Below, in pieces: positions 44,842 through 59,776 of a stretch of 64,000 nucleotides of DNA. The position numbers and the translations under genes were made by a program. Source of the stretch: Anthoceros angustus. Lineage: Eukaryota; Plantae; Anthocerotophyta. Location of the stretch: positions 1,240,001 to 1,304,000 of the forward strand of contig MU008160.1 of the NCBI GenBank assembly GCA_010909165.1. Reading direction: 5' to 3'. Every line of letters begins with the position of its first letter. The first letter of the stretch is position 1. The notes below the pieces were generated by a model. That model saw only the letters and a list, made by a program, of their open reading frames with translations. It was not told the DNA's origin and made no database searches.

Positions 44842-47046
44842 ATGGCGGCGTCTGGCCTGGGCCTGGGCCTGCTGGCGGTGCTGCTGGCGGTGTTGCTCGG
44901 GGGTGCGGGGTCGGGGGCGCGGGTGGCGGTGGAGCAGTGGCTCCAGCTGCCCCAGGAGGGTACAGGCCGGGAGGAGCTGGGCGCGGAGGGGCGCCGGAGG
45001 GAGGCCGGGTGGGGACCAGGTGGGCGGTGCTCATTGCGGGGTCGTCGGGGTACGGGAATTATCGGCATCAGGTGGGTGCGGGACGGGGAATTCGGTGGTG
45101 GGTTTGTTGAATTCGGTTGTGGGCGGTGCTGATTTGGAAGGGGCGGGTTGTGGGTTGTGGCAGGCGGACGTCTGCCATGCGTACCAGATTCTGAAGAACA
45201 ATGGGCTCAAGGACGAGAACATCGTGGTGTTCATGTACGATGATATCGCCTTCAGCCCGGATAATCCGCACAAGGGGACGATCATCAACAACCCGCGGGG
45301 GGGGGACGTGTACGCCGGCGTGCCCAAGGTGGGTGGAATGGAGCTTGTGGGTTGTCTGGAGAGGGGGCGTGGGGAGTTGGGTCGTGACGTGGTTGTGGTG
45401 GGGTGGTCTTGTTGGTGCAGGATTACACCGGGGCTGCTGTCACTGTGAACAACTTCTTTGCCGTGCTTCTTGGAGACAAGTCTGCGGTTCAGGGCGGGAG
45501 CGGGAAGGTTGTGGCGAGCGCGCCCGAGGACCATGTTTTCATCTACTACACCGACCATGGGGGTCCCGGAGTGCTGGGTGAGTTTTAGGGACTGGTGTTG
45601 GGGAGACTGTTGTTGCGCGGAAGAGCGGGATTGATGACGGTGCGTTTCTTCTTTGGTGTGGGCAGGAATGCCGAATGTGCCGAATTTGTTTGCTAATGAC
45701 TTCGTGGAGACTCTCAAGCTGAAGCATGCCCTGGGCACGTACACCGAGATGGTGATCTATCTGGAGGCTTGCGAGAGTGGGAGCATCTTCGAGGGGCTGC
45801 TTCCGGAGGGCCTCGACGTTTACGTCACCACAGCGTCTAATGCTCAGGAGAGTAGCTGGGGGACGTACTGCCCTGGGATGGAGAATCCTCCCCCTCCTGA
45901 GTACTGGACCTGTCTCGGGGACCTCTACAGTGTTGCTTGGATGGAGGACTGGTGAGTTGCTTACTTGTTATCCTTAAAGTAGGAGATTCCCCTTTTTGTG
46001 TATCTGACAGAAGAGGGGTCTGTTGGGTGCAGCGAGGTGGAGAACTTGGAGAAGGAGACACTGAAAGACCAGTACCTCATTGTGAGTGCAGAGACTTTTT
46101 ATCCCGTCCTTTTGTTCGTTTTGAGAGACACGATACTGTTCCTTCATTTGCAGGACTCATTTGTGCTCATCTCCTTGTCGGTGTTCTTCTTCTTTGACAG
46201 GTGAAGAAGAGGACCTCGAATGACAACACTTACAGATCTGGCTCACATGTGATGCAATACGGCGACATTAAGATAAACTCGGACAGATTATCTCTCTTCT
46301 TAGGCTATGACCCTCTGAATGCGAACGTCAGCAGGCCTGACTTGTCGGACATGGGCATTTCCGGGAACAATCTGCCTGCTGGGGAGTCACTGGCTGTGAA
46401 TCAACGTGATGCTGATTTGCTGCACTATTGGCACAAGGTACAAGCATCATTAGCCTTAATAATGTGGATTTGCAGTGAACTTTGGAAGGGACGAGGGTAA
46501 CTGGTTTTTGCATGTCTGACATCCTTCTCTTCCTTGTCCCCTTTGCGACTGATTTTCCAGTACAAGCATTCACCAGAAGGGTCGAGGAACAAAGTGGAAG
46601 CTGCTCAGGACATGGCAAGAATAATGTCTCAGCGTGCACACATCGACTCCAGTGTCAACTTGATGGGGAAGCTGCTCTTCGGATCCGAGTGGGGGCCTGA
46701 AATGTTGGCGGCAGTACGGAAGCCGGCCCTGCCTCTTGTCGACGACTGGCAGTGCCTCAAGGCCGTGGTAAGTGGGCAGCAGCTGAAGCTGGTCTTCGTA
46801 ATCTTTTCGACAAAGATTTGAGGTTAATCTGAGTGTCTGGATGCATGAATGCAGGTGCGGGCTTACGAGAGTGAGTGTGGCTCGCTGACCCAGTATGGCA
46901 TGAAGCACATGCGATCCTTCACAAACATGTGCAACTCTGGGTTCGGTCCCGAGAAGGTGGCAGAAGCTGCGGCAGAGGCATGTTCGATCGACATGATCGG
47001 CGGTGGTAGGGAATGGGCACCTCTTACAACAGGCTTCAGTGCTTAA
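44842..47046 (+). CDS. VPE: Vacuolar processing enzyme / legumain (peptidase C13), multi-exon; apparent frameshift in a G-run near 44990
   Basis: Signal peptide, [87 protein letters not shown] and [14 protein letters not shown]. Confidence 0.95.
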
Positions 47047-48227
47047 GTTTCCTCTCCGGGCTTGGAGGAGTTGCTGTACATAGTGCATGCGGGCATTGAT
47101 CCGAATTAGTACCTTTGGTTGAGGTAGGTCGGTTAAGGTCGGATTTAGCAAGGTAATTGGTAGACCAGTTCAGTAACAAGGGCGGGTAGCCTGAATGGAT
47201 CATATTCTTCAGGCTCTGTACATTCATCCTTTTATTAGGTCCTCCACAGTAAAGGAAAAGCCTTTACAGTTTGTGAGCATGCATCGTGTTTGCATGTTTC
47301 CATCCCTTGGATTTTTTAAAGGGCTGAAATTGATGGGTCACACAGGTCCGTGCAGTAAGTCAAAAAACTTTCTTGCATCAGCACTAGAGGGTAGCAAGTA
47401 GTTTGGATAGAAGGGAGTAGACCCATTTTCTGCACCATACCCGGAGAGAATCTTTGCCGTCCTGTTTTAGAGTTTTCTGTGTGAGATGCCTAGCTCCTGC
47501 GCTTCATCCACAGAGCCCTTGCAAGGCTGGCTGACGAGGCAGTTAGTAGCACAACGAGTGACACCTTCAGTTTCATCATGATTTGCATGCAACCAAAAAT
47601 ACCTACCCAAAACTCTGTTTGGTATCTTGGCAGTTCCCCAGAACTTCCAAACTCCTGTAGATTTCAAGACACTACCCTCTGTCTACTACTCGTTCAGGCC
47701 TGTCTGATTCCATGCTTTATATTATTGCCAACTTCTTTGTGTCTGTGGTTCCATACTGTTGGCGGAACTTACCAGAGAACCAACGCCACAGAAGGAGAAC
47801 AAAACGAATGATACCACACCAGAAGGTGTTGCCTGTGCCTTCACACCCTCTACAAACCCGCTTCCTGAAGGTTGGACGACGATGCCCTTGATCAGCTTCT
47901 CATTTGGTATAAAACTCAGGAACTCTCGGACAGCCTTCTGGATGTAAGAGGCACCCAACAATCGCTGGGCGCTATGTGGAATATGATGCTCCTCTTCCAC
48001 GCACAAAGCCTCGTCATGATCAATCTGCAGGTCAGTGCGAGACCTGTGGTTGGCGAATATTAGGACCTGGAGCAGCAGACTTTGTTCGACAGGAGCACTT
48101 TGCATGACTTCTATCAGAATCACGGTTGAAATGTGCGCAGTACCTGTAACACCTGATGCTGATGAGCCCCCGGTTCTTACAGATCGAGAGAGTTCCTAGA
48201 GCGGGAAAACTCTAGGACGTAGATCAG

Positions 48228-51146
48228 TTATAAGGAACAATCAGAGTTGTGAAAGGGTTTTTCACATGTGCAGACGCCGTCTACAAAATGGTGGACACGG
48301 TGAGCATCTCTAACTATGATGTCCCGCCTCTCAATTCTCGACATGACCTTGGTGCTACTGTGGCAGTCATTGCACATTCGGAGGTTTTTGGTGACCAACA
48401 AAGGAGTGCCGTCAGGAGTGTTCAAGAGCCCATATGCCAAAGCGAGCTTCTCAGCATGTCCACATAAGGCATCTTCTTTCTCTCGATCATGAGACTGCAG
48501 CTTCACAACAAGGCCAGGGAGGGGCATGACCCCACCGTCCTCCCGCAACCGCTGATTCACGCTTCTGAGCTTGGACGAGATGTCATCCCTTTCCTCTCCA
48601 ACAACAAATGTGTGGACCTTGCTACTTACCTCGATCCATGCCCGTGCAGGCTTCTTGCAAGCACCTGCTGACTTCCTCAGGCTCTCTACCCTCTCAACAG
48701 CACCCCACATGCCAGCATCTGCAAACGTGTTAGATAAAAGCACGTAAGCGGCAGTGTTTTGAGGTTCCAATCTGGTAATGTGGTCAAAACAGCGCCTGGC
48801 GCGCTGTGTGTCTCCATGGTTCTTGCAGGCACTCAAAAGAGACATCCATCCCACTGTGTCATTCTGAAACGGCATGGACAGCAACATTTGCTCTGCTGCT
48901 TCCAGGCGGCCGGCCCGCCCAAGAAGATCAACCATGGAATTATAGTGATCTGCGGTGGGCGTGATTCCATAGGCGTCCCCCATCATCCTGAAATACTGCT
49001 TGCCTGCATCCACCAACCCTGCATGACTGCATGCCACGAGTAGGGAAACGAAGGTAGCATCGTTGGGCTCCACCCCTTGCTCTTGCATCTCCTCAAAGCA
49101 GTTGAGGGCCTTCTGGCACTCATTGTGTTGGCCGTAGCCATTAAGTAAGGCATTCCATGTCACTACATTTCTAGAGTCCAAGTTGTTGAACACTCTACGA
49201 GCATCCCCTAAGCTGCCACATTTTGCATACATGTCAACCAGGCTGCTGCCAACTATCACATTGTTTTCGAGCCCTCGTTTCTTCAGCTGCGAATGCAGCT
49301 GTTTCCCCTCATGTAGTGCTCCAATGCTGGCACATGCCCTCAGAAGAGAAACATATGTTACTACATCTACTGGAGTCATACCCACTTTCTCCATACTTAC
49401 GTAGAGAGCCAGGGCTTCCTCACCAAACCCATGCTGGGCATATGCTGTGATCATGGCAGTCCATGCTACCACATGTTTTGCAGGCAGGCTGTCAAAGACT
49501 TTGCAAGCATCCTCCAAGCTCCCACATTTAGCATACATGTCCACCAAGCTGGTCCCAACACCCACATCGCCTGCTAGTCCTGCTTCCTGAATCTGTGCGT
49601 GCACCTGCTTCCCTTCATGCAATGCTCCAAGACTGGCGCAGGCTTTTAGAAGGCACAAAAATGTAACATGATCCGCTGGAATCAAGCCCTCCTCTTGCAT
49701 GGTTGTGTACAGAGCAAGGGCTGCTTCACCTAGTCCAAGCTCCGCATATCCTCTTATCATGGCAGTCCAGCTCACTACATCTCTTAAGGGCAGCCCGTCA
49801 AACACTTTGCGAGCATCTTCTAAGCTCCCACATTTTGCATACATGTCCACCAAACTGTTGCCAACAACCAAGTCAACTTCTAACCCTACTTCCTGGATGA
49901 GAGAATGAAGTTGCTTCCCCTCATGCAACGCTCCAACACTGGCACAAGCTTTGACGAGGCTCAGCAGTGTAACACGGTCAGCTGGGTTTATGCCCTCCTG
50001 TTGCATAGATACATAAAGTGTGAGGGCTTCTTGACCAAGCCCATGCTGAGCGTAACCCGAAATCATGGCCGTCCATGTCACAATATCTCTGGTGGTCAGA
50101 CTCTCAAACACCCTCCGAGCGTCCTCTAGGCTGCCACACTTTGCATACATGTCCACAAGGCCATTTGCCACAAATATGTTGGGTTCAACTGCAGAACCCA
50201 AAACATCAGCATGGACGAGCCTGCCAGATGCCAAGTCCACTGCACCAGCACACGCCTTGAGAGCGGCCACAAATATATGATTGTCCGGCCTCAGAGTTGA
50301 CTCTCGCATCCGTCCATACCAATGTATGGCCTTAGCAGGCTGTCCGTGTTCAACATGTGCCATGATTATGGAAGCCCACATAAAAGAGTCCGGTGCAACC
50401 AAATCGGCGAACACCTGCACCGCATCCAGTAACCTCCCATGTGCAGCATACATGCAAATGAGGTGGTTCGCCAAGAACGTGTTCCACTCGTACCCACTCC
50501 TGCGAGTAAAAGCATGAACGTTCGTACCAGCGACCAGATCTCTCTTCGCCATGCATTCTTTTAGGACAGAATAAAAGAGGGATGCAGGGACATAAGACTC
50601 TTGCTCGACAAGCAGATCCAACAGGGTAAAGGCTGCATCGGGCTGTCCCTCCTCGTGGACTGAGCCACAGGTTTCAATCTCCAAAGCTGCTTCACCCCTT
50701 GCCAACCTGCAATGTTGCCAAACTTCAGGAACAAACAAACTCGGACACCTCGAAAATGCGTAACTTACATCTGCCTGCTTAGAGTGCATCACCGGATGGC
50801 AAGGACCAGAAGTTACCTTCTCCCACTCTTTCCCCCACCACTCGAAGGGCTCCTTCCCCAATGACGCCAGCCATGCCCTTGGCTCCACTGCAAGTCAGCT
50901 GAACATAAGAATCTGAGAGCTTGCCAGCTGCAAGCCTGGTGCAAGAAGGTAGCACACCCAATAGCAGGCAGGTACACACTCACCAGGGGTACTTGCTGAT
51001 GTAGTCTGCTGCCGCAACGAGGAAAAACATCTGCAACCCTGGTCTGCAGCGCTGCGGAGACGAGGCTTGCTTTGAATCAGCCTCGACAAGACCGAAAGGT
51101 CACCCACTTTCTTCATCAGTGCCACGTCCCCCACAAGCCTCCGCAT
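48228..51146 (-). CDS. PLS-class PPR RNA-editing factor with complete DYW:KP deaminase domain; exons 51146-50984 and 50887-48228
   Basis: Exon 1 is transit-peptide-like (RCFSS) and joins in phase 1 (G/gtgagt..cttgcag/TG). It is followed by the PLS array, E domains, KKPARAWIE, CGHAEKLALAYGL, KNLRMCNDCH and RDAHRVHHFVDGVCTC. Confidence 0.95.
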
Positions 51147-51589
51147 GGATCATAGCACCGTGGTGCGGTAGAATCCCGGTCATTTGCGCAAACCCAGAAC
51201 CGAGATTTGATGACGGCGCACATTCAAGAGAGAGCCACGATGAGGCCGGAGCGACCGAAAGTCGACTCGAAAGTCTTAGAACGATTCCATTCTGAAGAAA
51301 TTCTGTCTGTAACATTGGTTACCCTGCATAACAATGCAAGTCATGTGAGACTGTTTCCACAAGTGTTAGAAGCTGATATCCGACGCACATCACTTCTTCA
51401 GTTTGCCGGTAATGCTTGTTATGATGCTTTGATCATGTGTTTCAGAAGAGCCCCCCATGATTCCCTGCTTTCGATCCCGAGGAAGACTCTCAACACTTGT
51501 GAATCCTTCTTAGCATCGGGTATCATCTACGGAGCACAAAAAGGCAGAGATGTTGGTCGCACTGTCAGCAGCCCAATGGACATGATATC

Positions 51590-53881
51590 GTGCTCTTCCG
51601 AGATATGGTTCTGGCAATCCAGTCACGCAAAGGACAGCAGGACCCGCTGGGAGAACAGGTTTTGTGGGCGAAACAAAGGGGTGGGTTGAGAGGTATTCAG
51701 GGAAGATCTCCCGCTCAGCTGACTTGTAGGAAGCGATCTTTGGCACACAATGCAGCCGCCAGGTGCAACATCTTTGCAAGAAAGCCAGCCAGTCCAAGAG
51801 AGTGTCTGGCATTTTCGAAGGAGAGTCTTGGACAGGAGCTCGTTTCCAAGCCACCTTGGGTGGATGGGCAGCTGGGTGCTCTGGGAATGCCGTTTGGCCG
51901 TCGTTCCCCTGCAACAAACTGGAGTCTGCTGGATGGTGCTGACTCTTGCAGGCCTGCAGGATACGAAAAGGGGATGACGGCTGAAACCGTGACCAAGCTG
52001 TGTCAGGAGGGGCAGGTCAAGGAGGCCGTTGAAGCTCTGGGAGTGATGGTGCAAGGCGACTATCATATTTCCAAATTCGTGTTTTACACGGTCCTTAAAG
52101 AATGTGTGGCTATGAGGGATCTGCCCCTGGGTCGTCGTGTTCATGCGGTTATGGTGAAGAAAGGGTATGAGTCGGACACGTTCTTGTGCAACCACATCCT
52201 GCGAATGTATTCTTCGCATGCCAGGTTGCAAGAAGCCATGGATGTGTTTGGCGTGGTTGCCAAACCAGATGTCTTCATGTGGTCTTCTATGATTTCTGCG
52301 TATGTGAAACTGGGGCAAGATAAGCAGGCCATAGACCTCTATCATAGGATGCGCAGGTCAGGTGTGAAGCCAGATGGCCATGTGCTTGTCGCAGCACTTC
52401 AGGCTTGTGCGAAGGGAGCGGATTTGAAATCTGGACAGCAAGTGCATGCTGATGTGCTGGTTGGTGGCGCTGAGCATGATGTGTTTGTATGTAGTTGCTT
52501 GGTGGACATGTATGCAAAGTGTGGCAGCTTGAAAGACGCTCAAAGGGTGTTTGACGGACTTGGTGAAAAAAATGCTGTGACCTGGAATGCCATGATAGCA
52601 GGGTATTCCCAGCAGGGCATGGGCGCAAAAGCCCTTCGCCTTTATAGTGCTATGGCAGAAGGAGGCATGGCTGCACCCACTTCTGTTACGTTTATTTGCC
52701 TTCTGCAGGCATGTGCAAGTATGGGCACGCCGGCATTGGAGAAGGGGAAGCACCTTCATGCACATATAAGACAGCAAGGACTTGAAGCTGATCTTGTTGT
52801 AGGTGGCAGCCTGGTAAACATGTATGCGAAGTGCGGAAGCTTAGAGGATGCTAGGGGCGTGTTCGACGGACTTGGTCATAAAAATGTGGTGGCGTGGAAT
52901 GCCATGATAGCAGGATACTCCCAGCAGGGCATGGGGCAGGAGGCTCTTGCTCTTTACAGGGCTATGCAAGAAGAAGAAGGCACTATTCCACCCAATTCTG
53001 TTACGTTTTTGTGCCTCCTTCAAGCATGTGGAAGTCTGGCAGCTCTGCATGTGGGAAGGCAGCTTCATGCACAGATCAAGGAGCAAGGTCTCCAAGGTGA
53101 CGTGCTTATAGCCGGCAGTTTGATAGACATGTATGGGAAGTGCGGTAGCATGTTTGAGGCACGGCATGTATTCGAGACATCAGTCGAAAGAGATGTTGTC
53201 GCATGGAGTGCATTGATTGCTGGATACACCCGTCAAGGAAACTGTGACGAGGTCTTCAATTTGATTTGCAGAATGCGACACAGTGGCATACAGCCAGACG
53301 GCATCACATTTCTCAGTGTACTGACAGTATGCAGTCATGCTGGCCTTGTGAACAAGGGGAGAGAGTACTTTGAATCTATGAGCAAACACTATGGCATCAC
53401 TCCTACGCTGGAGCACTACACATGCATGGTGGATCTTTTAGGTCGTGCAGGTCGACTGCATGAATCACTAGTCTTCATAAAGACAATGCCTCTGCAGCCT
53501 AATGCTGCAGTCTGGCACACTCTAATAGGTGCTTGTAGAAAGTGGAAAAACGTGGAGGTGGGATGCCATGCTTTCCATGAAGCAGTGAAGCTAAACAACG
53601 AAGATGCTGTAGCATACGTCTTGATGTCCAACGTGTACACCAGTGCCCAAATGTGGGATCAGGCAGATGAGTTGCAGTCAAGGAGACTAAGAATCAAAGC
53701 ATGGAAGAAGCCAGGTCAGAGCTGGTGGACAGACATGGGTGGACACGTTCATAGCTTTCTGGTTGGGTATAAGACGCACACTGGGCACGAAGAGAGCGAG
53801 TCTTTCCCAATAAGCGAAGAGGGATATGTGCCACATCTGGATTCCTGGTCAGGAGCACTATCTGAATCTGATGACGGGTGA
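51590..53881 (+). CDS. PLS-class PPR protein with truncated WW-type DYW domain (E+ like)
   Basis: PLS repeats, E domains, KKPGQSWWTDMGGHVHSFLVG...EGYVPHL, then a stop. No HxE or CxxC. Confidence 0.92.
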   Translation: MLFRDMVLAIQSRKGQQDPLGEQVLWAKQRGGLRGIQGRSPAQLTCRKRSLAHNAAARCNIFARKPASPRECLAFSKESLGQELVSKPPWVDGQLGALGMPFGRRSPATNWSLLDGADSCRPAGYEKGMTAETVTKLCQEGQVKEAVEALGVMVQGDYHISKFVFYTVLKECVAMRDLPLGRRVHAVMVKKGYESDTFLCNHILRMYSSHARLQEAMDVFGVVAKPDVFMWSSMISAYVKLGQDKQAIDLYHRMRRSGVKPDGHVLVAALQACAKGADLKSGQQVHADVLVGGAEHDVFVCSCLVDMYAKCGSLKDAQRVFDGLGEKNAVTWNAMIAGYSQQGMGAKALRLYSAMAEGGMAAPTSVTFICLLQACASMGTPALEKGKHLHAHIRQQGLEADLVVGGSLVNMYAKCGSLEDARGVFDGLGHKNVVAWNAMIAGYSQQGMGQEALALYRAMQEEEGTIPPNSVTFLCLLQACGSLAALHVGRQLHAQIKEQGLQGDVLIAGSLIDMYGKCGSMFEARHVFETSVERDVVAWSALIAGYTRQGNCDEVFNLICRMRHSGIQPDGITFLSVLTVCSHAGLVNKGREYFESMSKHYGITPTLEHYTCMVDLLGRAGRLHESLVFIKTMPLQPNAAVWHTLIGACRKWKNVEVGCHAFHEAVKLNNEDAVAYVLMSNVYTSAQMWDQADELQSRRLRIKAWKKPGQSWWTDMGGHVHSFLVGYKTHTGHEESESFPISEEGYVPHLDSWSGALSESDDG

Positions 53882-55581
53882 AGAACCATCTTGATCTTCC
53901 TGTTAAGAATGATCCGGGACTTTGGCATGGATCCCATATTCTCAGCTGGTTTCCAGGTACAGAGGAGTCTCCTTGTGAATCAAAGCTCTTTTGCAACAAA
54001 GGTGGTGCACGGCAGGAGAGGGATATGTGCCACATCCGGATTGCTGGTCAGGAGCACTACCTGAATCTGATAATGGGTGAAGAACCATCTTGATCTTCCC
54101 GTTAAGAATGATCGGGGACTTTGGAATGGATCCCATATTCTCAGGTGGTTTCCAGGTACAAAGGAATCTCCTTGTGAATCAAAGGTCTTTTGCGACAAAG
54201 GTGGTGCACGGCAGGAGAGGGATATGTGCCACATCCGGATTGCTGGTCAGGAGCACTACCTGAATCTGATGATGGGTGGAAAACCATCTTGATCTTCCCG
54301 TTAAGAATGATCGGGGACTTTGGAATGGATCCCATATTCTCAGGTGGTTTCCAGGTACAAAGGAATCTCCTTGTGAATCAAAGGTCTTTTGCGACAAAGG
54401 TGGTGCACGGCAGGAGAGGGATATGTGCCACATCCGGATTGCTGGTCAGGAGCAATAACTGAATCTGATGACGGGTGGAAAACCATCTTGATCTTCCCGT
54501 TAAGAATGATCAGGGACTTTGGAATGGATCCCATATTCTCAGGTGGTTTCCAGGTACAAAGGAATCTCCTTGTGAATCAAAGGTCTTTTGCGACAAAGGT
54601 GGTGCACGGCAGGAGAGGGATATGTGCCACATCCGGATTGCTGGTCAGGAGCAATAACTGAATCTGATGACGGGTGAAGAACCATCTTGATCTTCCTGTT
54701 AAGAATGATCCGGGACTTTGGCATGGATCCCATATTCTCAGCTGGTTTCCAGGTACAAACCTTGTGAATCAAAGCTCTTTTGCGACAAAGGTGGTGCACG
54801 GCAGCAGAGGATATGTGCCACATCTGGATTGCTGGTCAGAGCACTACTTGAATCTGATGATGGGTGAAGAACCATCTTGATCTTCCTGTTAAGAATGATC
54901 CGGGACTTTGGCATGGATCCCATATTCTCAGCTGGTTTCCAGGTACAAAGGAGTCTCCTTGTGAATCACACGCTCTTTTGCGACAAAGGTTGTGCACGGC
55001 AGGAGGGATATGTGCCACATCCGGATTGCTGGTCAGGAGCGCTACCTGAATCTGATGATGGGTGAAGAACGATTTTGATCTTCCTGTTAAGAATGATCCG
55101 GGACTTTGGCATGGATCCATATTCTCAGCTGGTTTCCAGGTACAAACCTTGTGAATCAAAGCTCTTTTGCGACAAAGGTGGTGCACGGCAGCAGAGGGAT
55201 ATGTGCCACATCTGGATTGCTGGTCAGGAGCACTACTTGAATCTGATGATGGGTGGAAAACCATCTTGATCTTCCTGTTAAGAATGATCCGGGACTTTGG
55301 CATGGATCCATATTCTCAGCTGGTTTCCAGGTACAAAGTCTCCTTGTGAATCACGCTCTTTTGCGACAAAGGTTGTACGGCAGGAGAGGGATATGTGCCA
55401 CATCCGGATTGCTGGTCAGGAGCGCTACCTGAATCTGATGATGGGTGAAGAACGATTTTGATCTTCCTGTTAAGAATGATCGGGGACTTTGACAATAATC
55501 CCATATTCTCAGCTGGTTTCCAGGTTCAAAGGAGTCTCCTTGTGAATCAAACGCTCTTTTGCGAAAAGGTTGTGCACGGCA
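53819..55581. repeat. ~199-bp tandem array, 9 copies, starting inside the PPR 3' end
   Basis: gag(g)gatatgtgccacatc occurs at 53819, 54018, 54217, 54416, 54615, ~54807, 55003, 55194 and 55386. Confidence 0.97.
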
Positions 55582-56053
55582 GAAAGCATCCGCAAGCCTG
55601 GGCAGCCTGGCCCTGGAGATGGGAAAATGAGCAAATTAGAGAACAAGGAATCCGCACGCGGTTATAGCCAGCACAATCAACTCTATTGGACATTAAATCT
55701 GGGAATACGGGGTGTTGGCTTCACACGGATGCCTTCCTAGATGTGCTTGCAAGGATACCACTAAGTGGCCCGATGTAGCATCCTTGCTACAGTTTTTGAA
55801 AAGAGCAAAATCAAACTGCTTGCTACAATAAAAACAAAATGGGCCTCGTGTCGAAACGTCATGCTTTTCAAGTTCATTCCACAAAGAGCTAGCTTTGTGT
55901 GATCTCTCTTGCCTCCAGCTCCTCTCGGACGTATCTGGCCTGGCCGGTGGCACCAGGGTCTGCATCCAGAGGCTTGTTCTTGCAAGCCATGGCTGGTAGC
56001 TTAATTGGGCTTCTGGGAAGATCTTCCCCTCGCCTGACTTCAAGCAAGAACTC

Positions 56054-59000
56054 GTGGTCGCACTGCCAAGTCGGGAAAGGCACCTCATTTGCAAGGCAAC
56101 CAGCCCGTCTGGGAGGATGCCTAGCTGGAGTAGGATTCTCTACAGAGTGTCGTCGCCAGCTCAACTTGTGGCGACAAATTTTTTGGGACCCCGGGGTAAG
56201 AGGCAAGATAAGAGGAGCCTCCAGTCTCCTCACTTCCGGCAAAAGCAGTCCCAGGAGGTCCTCTGGTTGAACAACTTCTGTAAGCCAGCTGTATTGGATG
56301 CACAGCTTGCTGTGATGGATGTAGGAATGAGTGGTCACTCGAGCAGGAGCTTACCGGATGATCGTTGCCCTCGCAGGTCTGTAGGTGATGGTAGGGATGT
56401 AACGGCTGAAACCGTGAGGAGACTGTGTCTGGAAGGCCATCTCGCTGTGTCGGTTGATGCTTTGGAAATTCTGGTGCAGACAGACTGTTCTATTTCAAAA
56501 TCGCTATTTTATACCGTCCTGAAGAAGTGTGTGGTCAACAAGAATCTTGTCCTTGGCAGTCGGGTCCATGCCTGCATGGTAAAGAAGGGGTACCAGTCAG
56601 ATACGTTCCTGTGCAACCACATTCTCCGAATGTATGCTTCTCATGGCAGGTTGCATGAGGCGATGGACGTGTTTGAAGGGGTTGTTAAACCAGATGCCTT
56701 CATGTGGTCGTCCATAATCTCTGCACATGTTAAACAGGGACAAGACAAGCAGGCTATACAACTCTATCATCGTATGCGGAGGTCCAGTGTGAAGCCAGAT
56801 AGTTATGTATTCGTGGCAGCCCTACAGGCTTGTGCAAGGGGCGGAGACCTGAAAGCTGGCCAGCAAGTCCATGCTGATGTGGTGGCCAGTGGTGATGTGA
56901 TGGCCGGTGGCACAGAGCCCGATTTGTTTGTTTCTAGTTGCCTGGTGGACATGTATGCAAAGTGTGGTAGATTGGAAGATGCCCAGCGTGTGTTTGATGG
57001 ACTTGGTAGAAAAGATGTTGTGACGTGGAATGCCATGATATCAGGATATTCTCAGAATGGCTTTGGGCAGGTAGCCCTTCGTCTCTACAGGGCTATGCAA
57101 AAGGACGGTATGGTTGTGCCCGATTCCGTGACATTTGTGTGTCTCCTGCAGGCATGTGCAGGTGTTGGCCCCCTTGCGTTGGAGAACGGGAAGGACCTTC
57201 ATGCACAAATTAGGGAACGGGGACATGAAGCTGATGTGTTGATAGCCAACAGTTTGGTAAATATGTATGCAAAGTGTGGGAGCTTAGAAGATGCGCAGAG
57301 AGTTTTTGATGGCCTTTCTCACAAAGATGTGGTAACGTGGACTGCCATGATAGCAGGATATTCCCAGCAGGGCATGGGGCATGAAGCCCTTCGTGTTTAC
57401 AGTGCCATGGAAGAAGAAGGCATGGCTGTTCCCAATTCCGTGACATTTGTGTGCCTGCTGCAAGCATGTACGAGTGTGGGTGCCCTGGCATTGGAGAAGG
57501 GTAAGCATGTGCATGCGCAAATTAGAAAACAAGGGTTCCAGGCTGATCTGTTTGTCGCCAACAGTTTGGTAAACATGTATGCAAAGTGTGGCAGCTTGGA
57601 GGATGCTTGGAGAGTGTTTGAAGCACTTGGTCACAAAGATGTGATCACGTGGAATGCCATGATAGCAGGATATTCACAGCAGGGCATGGGTCAGGAAGCC
57701 CTTAGTCTTTACAGTGGAATGCAAGCGGAGGGCATGGCTGTACCTGATTCAGTGACATTAGTTTGCCTCTTGCAGGCATGTGCAGCTGTGGGCACCCCGG
57801 CTCTGGAGCAGGGCAAGCAGCTCCATATGCAGATAAGTGAACAAGGTCACCAAGCTGATGTGTTTGTAGCTAGCAGTTTGTTGAACATGTATGCAAAGTG
57901 TGGCAGCTTGCAAGATGCAGAGAGAGTGTTTGAAGGACTTGGTCACAAAGATGTGGTGATATGGAATGCCATGATAGGAGCATATTCCCAGCAGGGGATG
58001 GGCCAGGAAGCCTTTCGCCTCTACAGCGCTATGCAAGATGAAGGCATTGCTGGACCTGATTCAATGACATTTGTGTACCTCTTGCAAGCATGTGCAAGTG
58101 TGGGTGCACTGGCTCTGGAGACGGGGAAGCAGCTTCATAGGCAGATTACAGAGCAAGAACTTGAAGCTGATGTGTTTGTAGCTAGCAGTGTGGTAAACAT
58201 GTATGCCAAGTGTGGCAGCCTGGAAGATGCGCAGAGAGTGTTTGAAGTTCTTGGCAACAAAGACGTGGTGACATGGAATGCCATGATAGCAGGATATTCC
58301 CATCAGGGCATGGGCCAAGAAGCCCTCCATCTCTACAGCGCTATGCAACAAGAAGGCATGGCTGTACCTGACCCTGTGACATTTGTGTGCCTCTTGCAGG
58401 CATGTGCAGGTGTAGGCACCCCGGCGTTGGAGATAGGGAAACAGCTTCATACACAGATCAGAGAACAAAGACACCAAGATGATGTGGTTGTGGCCAGCAG
58501 TTTGGTGAACATGTATGCAAAATGTGGCAGCTTGCAAGATGCACGGAAAGTGTTTGACAGCCTTGGTCAAAAAAATGAGGTGACCTGGACTGCCATGATA
58601 GCAGCATATTCCCAGCAGGGCATGGGCCAGGAAGCCCTTCATCTCTACAGGGCTATGCAAGATGAAGGCATGGCTGTACCTGACCCTGTGACATTTGTGT
58701 GCCTCTTGCAGGCATGTGCAGGTGTAGGCACCCCGGCGTTGGAGATAGGGAAACAGCTTCATACACAGATCAGAGAACAAAGACACCAAGATGATGTGGT
58801 TGTGGCCAGCAGTTTGGTGAACATGTATGCAAAATGTGGCAGCTTGCAAGATGCACGGAAAGTGTTTGACAGCCTTGGTCAAAAAAATGAGGTGACCTGG
58901 ACTGCCATGATAGCAGCATATTCCCAGCAGGGCATGGGCCAGGAAGCCCTTCATCTCTACAGGGCTATGCAAGATGAAGGCATGACCGTACCGGATTCCG

Positions 59001-59776
59001 TGACATTTGTGTGCATCCTGCAGGCATGTGCTAACGTGGCAGCTTTGCATCTGGGAAGGCAGCTACATGCCCACATTGTAGAACAAGGGCTTCAAACTGA
59101 TGAGTTTGTAGCCAGCAGTTTGATTAACATGTATGGGAAGTCGGGAAGCATGCTTGATGCACAGCGGGTGTTCGATGCGTTGCCCAAGAGAGACGTGGTC
59201 ACTTGGAACGCACTGATTGCAGGCTACACCTGTCAAGGAGACAGTGAAGGGGTCTTCAGCGCGTTCCGGAAGATGAGGGGAGATGGCATACTCCCAGATG
59301 GCATCACACTCCTGTGTGTACTAACGGTGTGCAGTCATGTGGGTCTAGGGAACAAAGGGTGGGAGCACTTTGAGGCTATGAGCAGATGCTATGGCATCAC
59401 CCCCACGGAGGACCACTACACATGCATGGTGGATGTCTTAGGTCGTGCAGGACAACTGGATGCGGCATTAGCCTTTGTGAGAACAATGCCTCTACAGCCT
59501 AAGGCTGCCGTCTGGCACACTTTGTTGGGTGCGTGTCGAAAGTGGAGGAACGTGGAGGTGGGACGCTATGCTTTTGAGGAAGCAGTGAAGCTAAACAAGA
59601 AAGATGCTGCAGCATATGTGTTGATGTCAAACATATACACCAGTGCCCAGATGTGGGAGCAAGCACAGAAGATGCAGGCAAAGAGAAAGAGAACGAGGGC
59701 ATGGAAGCAGCCAGGTCAAAGCTGGTGGACAGACAGAGAGGGACTGGTGCATGCTTTTTCGGTGGGGAATGAGTAA
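56054..59776 (+). CDS. Long PLS-class PPR protein with truncated WW-type DYW domain
   Basis: 1240-aa ORF with about seven to eight PLS triplets and E domains, ending KQPGQSWWTDREGLVHAFSVGNE*. The N-terminal TAETV...LC block is shared with the 51590 gene. Confidence 0.93.
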   Translation: MVALPSRERHLICKATSPSGRMPSWSRILYRVSSPAQLVATNFLGPRGKRQDKRSLQSPHFRQKQSQEVLWLNNFCKPAVLDAQLAVMDVGMSGHSSRSLPDDRCPRRSVGDGRDVTAETVRRLCLEGHLAVSVDALEILVQTDCSISKSLFYTVLKKCVVNKNLVLGSRVHACMVKKGYQSDTFLCNHILRMYASHGRLHEAMDVFEGVVKPDAFMWSSIISAHVKQGQDKQAIQLYHRMRRSSVKPDSYVFVAALQACARGGDLKAGQQVHADVVASGDVMAGGTEPDLFVSSCLVDMYAKCGRLEDAQRVFDGLGRKDVVTWNAMISGYSQNGFGQVALRLYRAMQKDGMVVPDSVTFVCLLQACAGVGPLALENGKDLHAQIRERGHEADVLIANSLVNMYAKCGSLEDAQRVFDGLSHKDVVTWTAMIAGYSQQGMGHEALRVYSAMEEEGMAVPNSVTFVCLLQACTSVGALALEKGKHVHAQIRKQGFQADLFVANSLVNMYAKCGSLEDAWRVFEALGHKDVITWNAMIAGYSQQGMGQEALSLYSGMQAEGMAVPDSVTLVCLLQACAAVGTPALEQGKQLHMQISEQGHQADVFVASSLLNMYAKCGSLQDAERVFEGLGHKDVVIWNAMIGAYSQQGMGQEAFRLYSAMQDEGIAGPDSMTFVYLLQACASVGALALETGKQLHRQITEQELEADVFVASSVVNMYAKCGSLEDAQRVFEVLGNKDVVTWNAMIAGYSHQGMGQEALHLYSAMQQEGMAVPDPVTFVCLLQACAGVGTPALEIGKQLHTQIREQRHQDDVVVASSLVNMYAKCGSLQDARKVFDSLGQKNEVTWTAMIAAYSQQGMGQEALHLYRAMQDEGMAVPDPVTFVCLLQACAGVGTPALEIGKQLHTQIREQRHQDDVVVASSLVNMYAKCGSLQDARKVFDSLGQKNEVTWTAMIAAYSQQGMGQEALHLYRAMQDEGMTVPDSVTFVCILQACANVAALHLGRQLHAHIVEQGLQTDEFVASSLINMYGKSGSMLDAQRVFDALPKRDVVTWNALIAGYTCQGDSEGVFSAFRKMRGDGILPDGITLLCVLTVCSHVGLGNKGWEHFEAMSRCYGITPTEDHYTCMVDVLGRAGQLDAALAFVRTMPLQPKAAVWHTLLGACRKWRNVEVGRYAFEEAVKLNKKDAAAYVLMSNIYTSAQMWEQAQKMQAKRKRTRAWKQPGQSWWTDREGLVHAFSVGNE
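58352..58983 (+). repeat. Identical in-frame 312-bp (one PLS triplet, 104 aa) duplication inside the PPR ORF
   Basis: gaaggcatggctgtacctgaccctgtgac occurs at 58352 and 58664. The translated 104-aa blocks are identical. Confidence 0.92.

Follow-up and report, generated by a model that had tools for sequence, protein, structure and literature searches.

In hornworts, ferns and lycophytes, U-to-C editing is presumed to be the work of natural PPR proteins with a DYW:KP domain. KP domains have been linked to U-to-C editing and to a lysine, Lys88 (PMC9478123, PMC11332814, PMC11845758), and when the PPR code is applied to the KP class as a whole, its members fit U-to-C sites (PMC9478123). Lys88-dependent U-to-C activity has been proven only for three designer proteins, KP2, KP3 and KP6 (PMC11845758, PMC9478123). 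These three edited in E. coli; KP1, whose design draws mostly on DRH proteins, did not belong to this active set (PMC9478123). DRH and GRP are two hornwort subgroups of DYW:KP (PMC9478123), and for the proteins of the DRH subgroup the latter paper cites Gerke et al. 2020 and Gutmann et al. 2020. The assembly of the hornwort Anthoceros angustus has already been mined for DYW proteins (PMC9478123). Since hornworts possess more than 1,400 PPR proteins (PMC10030945), the gene described here counts as a new instance of a known family.

This gene lies in a 64,000-nt stretch of A. angustus DNA (assembly GCA_010909165.1, contig MU008160.1, positions 1,240,001 to 1,304,000 of the forward strand), hereafter the window, whose own numbering we use throughout. 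Its product is most like the hornwort DRH KP proteins, with which it has in common the PLS-E1-E2-DYW architecture, a KPAxA-type box, a missing xHP, HAE, CxDCH and a Lys at CxxCH+4. It is 61–67% identical to them over E2-DYW and falls in the same tree clade. It differs from the DRH subgroup, whose proteins end in Asp-Arg-His directly after CxCG, in that EKPFHNSDCSL replaces the terminal GDRH, a change that substitutes Lys for Asp and adds seven residues, and at domain position 6, which is Trp in our protein and Cys in most DRH-subgroup relatives. The designer proteins KP2 and KP3 (GRP type) and KP6 (fern type) belong to the same domain class and share Lys88, M92 and HAE with it, and KP6 also shares F133. 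However, the designer proteins are synthetic, consensus-built and of demonstrated activity, whereas ours is encoded by a natural gene and has a longer tail. The DYW:PG C-to-U domains of OTP86 (7o4e/7o4f), DYW1 (7w86) and a synthetic PPR-DYW protein (9kfx) have the same fold and zinc ligands, but they carry a PG box, xHP, HSE and a GDYW terminus, and they lie on the opposite side of a 99-supported split.

An intact PPR gene with a DYW:KP domain

The main ORF occupies positions 48228–50888 on the minus strand and is uninterrupted over 886 codons. It contains Pfam PPR/PPR_2 repeats, an E_motif (residues 691–753) and a DYW_deaminase match at residues 799–877 (model positions 13–91 of 93, E = 5e-32). 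An open frame of 886 codons with the PPR-E-DYW domain order cannot have arisen by chance. The sequence-only reading had described the locus as an intact DYW:KP PPR gene, and the open frame and the Pfam matches bear this out; the strings KKPARAWIE, HAEKLA and CNDCH that it had named are all present, at 48630–48656 and 48360–48458. The main coding body has the following features.

48228–50887, minus strand: exon 2, the main coding body, with a TAA stop at 48228–48230 (ORF and sequence)
48858–50690, minus strand: PPR array, ORF residues 67–677 (Pfam, manual segmentation, 306-nt period)
48657–48857, minus strand: E1 and E2 motifs, ORF residues 678–744 (Pfam, manual segmentation)
48231–48656, minus strand: DYW:KP deaminase domain, ORF residues 745–886 (Pfam, tree, phmmer, AlphaFold2/Foldseek)
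48630–48656, minus strand: KP box KKPARAWIE, replacing the PG box (sequence)
48360–48458, minus strand: catalytic core, from HAE through the Lys88 equivalent in TKNLRM to CNDCH (sequence, alignment A2)
48264–48293, minus strand: HHFVDGVCTC, whose His and two Cys are, with the His of CNDCH, predicted structural second zinc ligands (H155, C162 and C164 invariant in alignment A2)
48231–48263, minus strand: atypical tail EKPFHNSDCSL, then TAA (sequence, AlphaFold2, tail comparison)

Two other PLS-PPR ORFs lie head-to-head with or downstream of this gene, at 51590–53881 (plus strand, 763 aa) and 56054–59776 (plus strand, 1240 aa). They are 45–47% identical to the KP protein and carry the PG/WW-type boxes KKPGQSWWT and KQPGQSWWT; a search of the window in every frame found no HxE...CxxCH deaminase core for them. 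A tandem array of nine copies of a 199-bp unit (92% matches) occupies 53818–55582. It starts within the last codons of the 763-aa ORF, so the C-terminus of that ORF enters the first repeat.

The PPR array and its predicted target

Manual segmentation yielded, from the N-terminus on, one degenerate P-L-S triplet, four triplets of the P1-L1-S1 kind, P2-L2-S2, E1, E2 and a 142-residue remainder. The 18 PPR motifs form six regular PLS triplets, with a triplet period of 306 nt in the DNA. The segmentation, the Pfam E_motif match and the 306-nt period all agree with the PLS-class order, (P1-L1-S1)n-P2-L2-S2-E1-E2-DYW. The P1 motifs are 36 residues long, compared with the usual 35, and end in PAD or PVD; a triplet measures 102 residues (306 nt; window positions 49100–50200, minus strand). 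A word search with the PPR array found no relative above 52% identity.

The residues at position 5 and at the last position of the motifs, counted from the N-terminus, are I/P, Y/N, N/D, A/D, V/N, N/D, T/D, L/D and N/D for motifs 1–9, and T/D, L/D, T/H, T/D, V/N and S/N for motifs 10–15. The remaining pairs are N/N (P2), V/T (L2), N/D (S2), M/N (E1) and V/C (E2). In the established PPR code, as reported by Barkan 2012, Takenaka 2013 and Yagi 2013, ND specifies U, TD specifies G, SN specifies A, and NN specifies C or U. The edited base lies four nucleotides past the last PLS triplet (PMC9478123). With S2 set at position -4 and the L-motif positions left as n, the predicted site would read 5ʹ-U n n U G n U G n (R) G n A Y n U n n n [edited base]-3ʹ, that is, U(-19), U(-16), G(-15), U(-13), G(-12), a doubtful R(-10), G(-9), A(-7), Y(-6) and U(-4).

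The deaminase domain is of the KP class

Judged by every sequence feature and by phylogeny, the domain is of KP type. Lys-Pro replaces the Pro-Gly of the PG box, Ala replaces the Ser of HxE, and phmmer alignments to the PG domains 9kfx and 7o4e place a 4-residue gap exactly at their xHP. The deletion past the box that characterizes the KP class spans 3–4 residues and removes xHP, the loss of which is listed as a KP mark (PMC11332814). Whichever frame of the window is read, HAEKLA...CNDCH is its sole HxE...CxxCH core. The catalytic and zinc residues are intact: the H, E, C, C, H, H, C and C columns are all invariant in alignment A2 (among them H100, E102, C128 and C131), and K123, the equivalent of Lys88, stands in a column conserved at 90% or above. 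Domain numbering follows the KP literature with one extra linker residue allowed, which puts Lys88 and Met92 on TKNLRM. In this numbering the second zinc would be held by H97 (of CNDCH), H120, C127 and C129, a role for these His and Cys residues that we take from PMC7611903. Starting at the K of the KP pair, the domain runs for 141 residues, compared with 133 in the usual KP domain; seven of the extra residues are in the tail and one is in a variable linker.

The best relatives over E2-DYW are unnamed proteins from Logan assemblies (55–67% identity), each with a KKPAxA-type box, HAE and a GDRH or GGRP ending; no relative above 67% identity was found in the E2-DYW word search. The endings DRH and GRP are those that PMC9478123 calls hornwort variants, and such relatives are consistent with a hornwort source. 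We built a tree of 105 DYW domains (42 with HAE, HCE or HVE and 63 with HSE) in IQ-TREE under LG+C20 with a quick search. The split between KP and PG domains has an SH-aLRT support of 99, and our domain is on the KP side. There it falls inside a clade of 21 rows, all KP (SH-aLRT 97), that holds both DRH and GRP sequences; the tree places it no more finely than this clade. Phylogeny had been named beforehand as one possible refuting test, and the assignment withstood it, since the domain groups with KP (99) and not with the PG/WW types.

Structural comparison points to the same fold. An AlphaFold2 model of E2-DYW, made from 53 aligned sequences, has a mean pLDDT of 83.7, and its top Foldseek matches are the solved DYW domains 9kfx, 7o4e/f and 7w86 (E from 8e-17 to 2e-7). 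The phmmer E-values against the solved DYW:PG domains range from 3e-46 to 3e-27.

The 5ʹ end of the gene

An ATG-initiated ORF at 50895–51146 (minus strand) is in frame with the main ORF, and a single TGA (50895–50897) stands between the two. We propose that the TGA lies in an intron.

50984–51146, minus strand: proposed exon 1, ATG, 54 codons and 1 nt (model)
50888–50983, minus strand: proposed 96-nt intron, GTGAGT...CTGAC...TTGCAG, holding the sole in-frame stop (splice consensus and frame preservation)

The intron begins with GTGAGT directly after a G, has CTGAC near its end and finishes with TTGCAG; its removal deletes the TGA and keeps the frame, and the spliced model has 940 codons. A separate upstream presequence exon is thus plausible. 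The exon 1 peptide of 54 residues is basic and rich in Ser and Thr (10 R/K, 3 D/E, 11 S/T), a composition that looks typical of an organelle targeting peptide. It has no homologue by BLAST among 188 relatives and no family match in Pfam or NCBIfam, and on the same searches we rejected an extra N-terminal domain, such as one with an OSB-type PDF motif. Since 96 nt is divisible by three, retention of the proposed intron would give a truncated upstream peptide instead of a frameshift.

A different gene model has no exon 1. PLS-PPR genes are usually intronless, and the lack of a homologue for the exon 1 peptide among the 188 relatives fits this model, as does the arrangement of two ORFs in one frame with a single TGA between them, which a point mutation could also cause. 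The program-made ORF begins with GTG at 50888, and the alternative ATG at 50789 is Met34 of this ORF. Were translation to start at Met34, the upstream ATG ORF would be a 5ʹ leader or an N-terminus severed by a nonsense mutation. However, only ~33 residues would then remain ahead of the first repeat. Moreover, the donor, the branch-like CTGAC and the acceptor are near consensus, the 96 nt keep the frame, and exon 1 is basic and hydroxyl-rich in the manner of a targeting peptide (10 R/K versus 3 D/E). We regard the model without exon 1 as possible, with a likelihood clearly below even.

An atypical C-terminal tail

The tail had been singled out as unusual in the sequence-only reading, and both its existence and its rarity were confirmed. 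Of 41 KP relatives, 37 have a tail of exactly four residues past CxC. The second residue past CxC is Asp in 32 of these 41 relatives and Lys in our protein. E130, K131, P132 and F133 occupy the place of the relatives' G-D-R-H (GDRH/GDYW) and are followed by a 7-residue extension, HNSDCSL. The last seven residues have a pLDDT below 50, and the extension is modelled as disordered. Longer natural KP tails do occur among the Logan/EukProt relatives, in P0010 (extended by 2 residues), P0021 (by 12) and P0029 (by 10); the tail of P0021 likewise begins with Glu and is without the Asp.

Other origins of the tail were considered and rejected. Other frames past CTC give VKNPFTTLIVPYN and a stop, or an immediate stop, and a one-base error in the A5 run would yield ENPFTT... 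or EKTLSQL and a stop. GDRH is restored in none of these cases, which argues against a frameshift or sequencing artefact. No repeats besides the PLS triplet periodicity were found in 46000–52000, and an insertion of a transposon or repeat at the 3ʹ end of the gene was rejected on this ground.

What does the change of the terminal motif mean for the protein? In OTP86, D958 hydrogen-bonds K928, a D958A mutant is impaired, and the terminal Trp stacks on a zinc-binding His (PMC7611903). A covariation between the Asp and the Lys at CxxCH+4 has been described for GRP proteins (PMC9478123). Consistent with this, the four GGRP relatives that are without the Asp have also swapped the partner Lys at CxxCH+4 (for T, E, Q and E), whereas our protein keeps that Lys (CHSSTK) although its Asp has become Lys. 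F133 could, by analogy, fill the aromatic role of the terminal motif; KP6 also has F133 (PMC11845758). Because Lys stands in place of the conserved terminal-motif Asp, we consider it likelier that the tail is a handicap than that it is an innovation.

The frame might therefore be intact in a copy that is catalytically weakened or decaying. The altered terminal motif would destabilize the structural zinc site, and the protein would be inactive or would serve as an RNA-binding specificity factor only. Mutations of the Asp and Trp of the DYW motif lower editing (PMC7611903, PMC9478123). The state seen here is exceptional, as Lys at the Asp position occurs in one of 42 KP-type domains (our own) and a tail of more than four residues in five of 42. 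When the last 49 residues were used in a word search, which covered proteins of 0.55–1.75x the query length that share exact words, it found three DRH-type proteins only, none with this tail, and no close relative was found for the PPR array (none above 52% identity). Against decay, the rest of the 886 codons hold no stop, and all catalytic and zinc ligands are kept. F133 can take the aromatic position as it does in KP6 (PMC11845758), CTCEKPF is still modelled at moderate confidence by AlphaFold2, and GRP-type proteins are also without the Asp, yet their designer versions are active (PMC9478123). On balance, we judge a weakened copy to be rather unlikely.

Discussion

Every residue known to be required is present, and hence the likeliest reading, which we hold at somewhat better than even, is that the gene encodes a site-specific organellar U-to-C editing factor. 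On this reading, the gene belongs to the nuclear part of a hornwort-type genome, and its product, a PLS-class PPR protein that ends in a DYW:KP domain, would be targeted to an organelle; the integrity of the gene, the order of its domains, the KP class and the intact zinc and catalytic residues are shown by the analysis. The PPR array would bind one organellar RNA stretch that matches the predicted motif, and the KP domain would then change the targeted uridine into cytidine. The mechanism would be the one that has been proposed for designer KP proteins: a lysine in the active site attacks C4 of the uridine, assisted by zinc and glutamate. The terminal motif would have shifted from the DRH type to EKPF with a floppy 7-residue extension, and with the loss of the conserved Asp, activity may be reduced. 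Two points call for caution. Among natural KP proteins, none is known to be active (PMC11845758), which counts against the U-to-C reading, and the protein most resembles the DRH subgroup, the basis of KP1.

An alternative is that the KP-type domain in practice edits C-to-U, or in both directions, at its site. Designer KP6 is bidirectional in human cells, and a few substitutions suffice to switch its direction (PMC9478123, PMC11845758). By our own numbering, the protein has G64 and V113, as does the C-to-U-only variant KP6c, into which they were introduced (E64G, L113V). However, it also has A116 and V119 of the U-to-C-only KP6u, and it keeps F133 and Lys88. G64, V113, A116, V119 and F133 form a mixed set of KP consensus states, and so they do not discriminate between the directions. 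The PPR-code match of the KP class to U-to-C sites (PMC9478123) also speaks against this alternative, and we consider C-to-U or dual editing improbable. It is more improbable still that the tail, with EKPF and the His, Asp and Cys of HNSDCSL, is a functional remodelling of the terminal zinc motif rather than damage, one that alters how the lysine-linked RNA intermediate is held or released, or the preference for neighbouring nucleotides; if it were, the gene would be a natural variant informative on the mechanism of U-to-C editing.

We thus favour the reading of the gene as a U-to-C factor, and as a further member of the already known hornwort KP family. Its sole individual feature is a private C-terminal variant that is probably mildly deleterious. 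Because all activity data for KP domains come from consensus-designed proteins, any intact native KP gene is a possible test object. The genome holds hundreds of genes of this family, however, and the altered terminal motif of this one makes it less suitable as the first candidate for demonstrating native activity. It could still serve as a natural test of how important the terminal Asp and the length of the tail are in KP domains.
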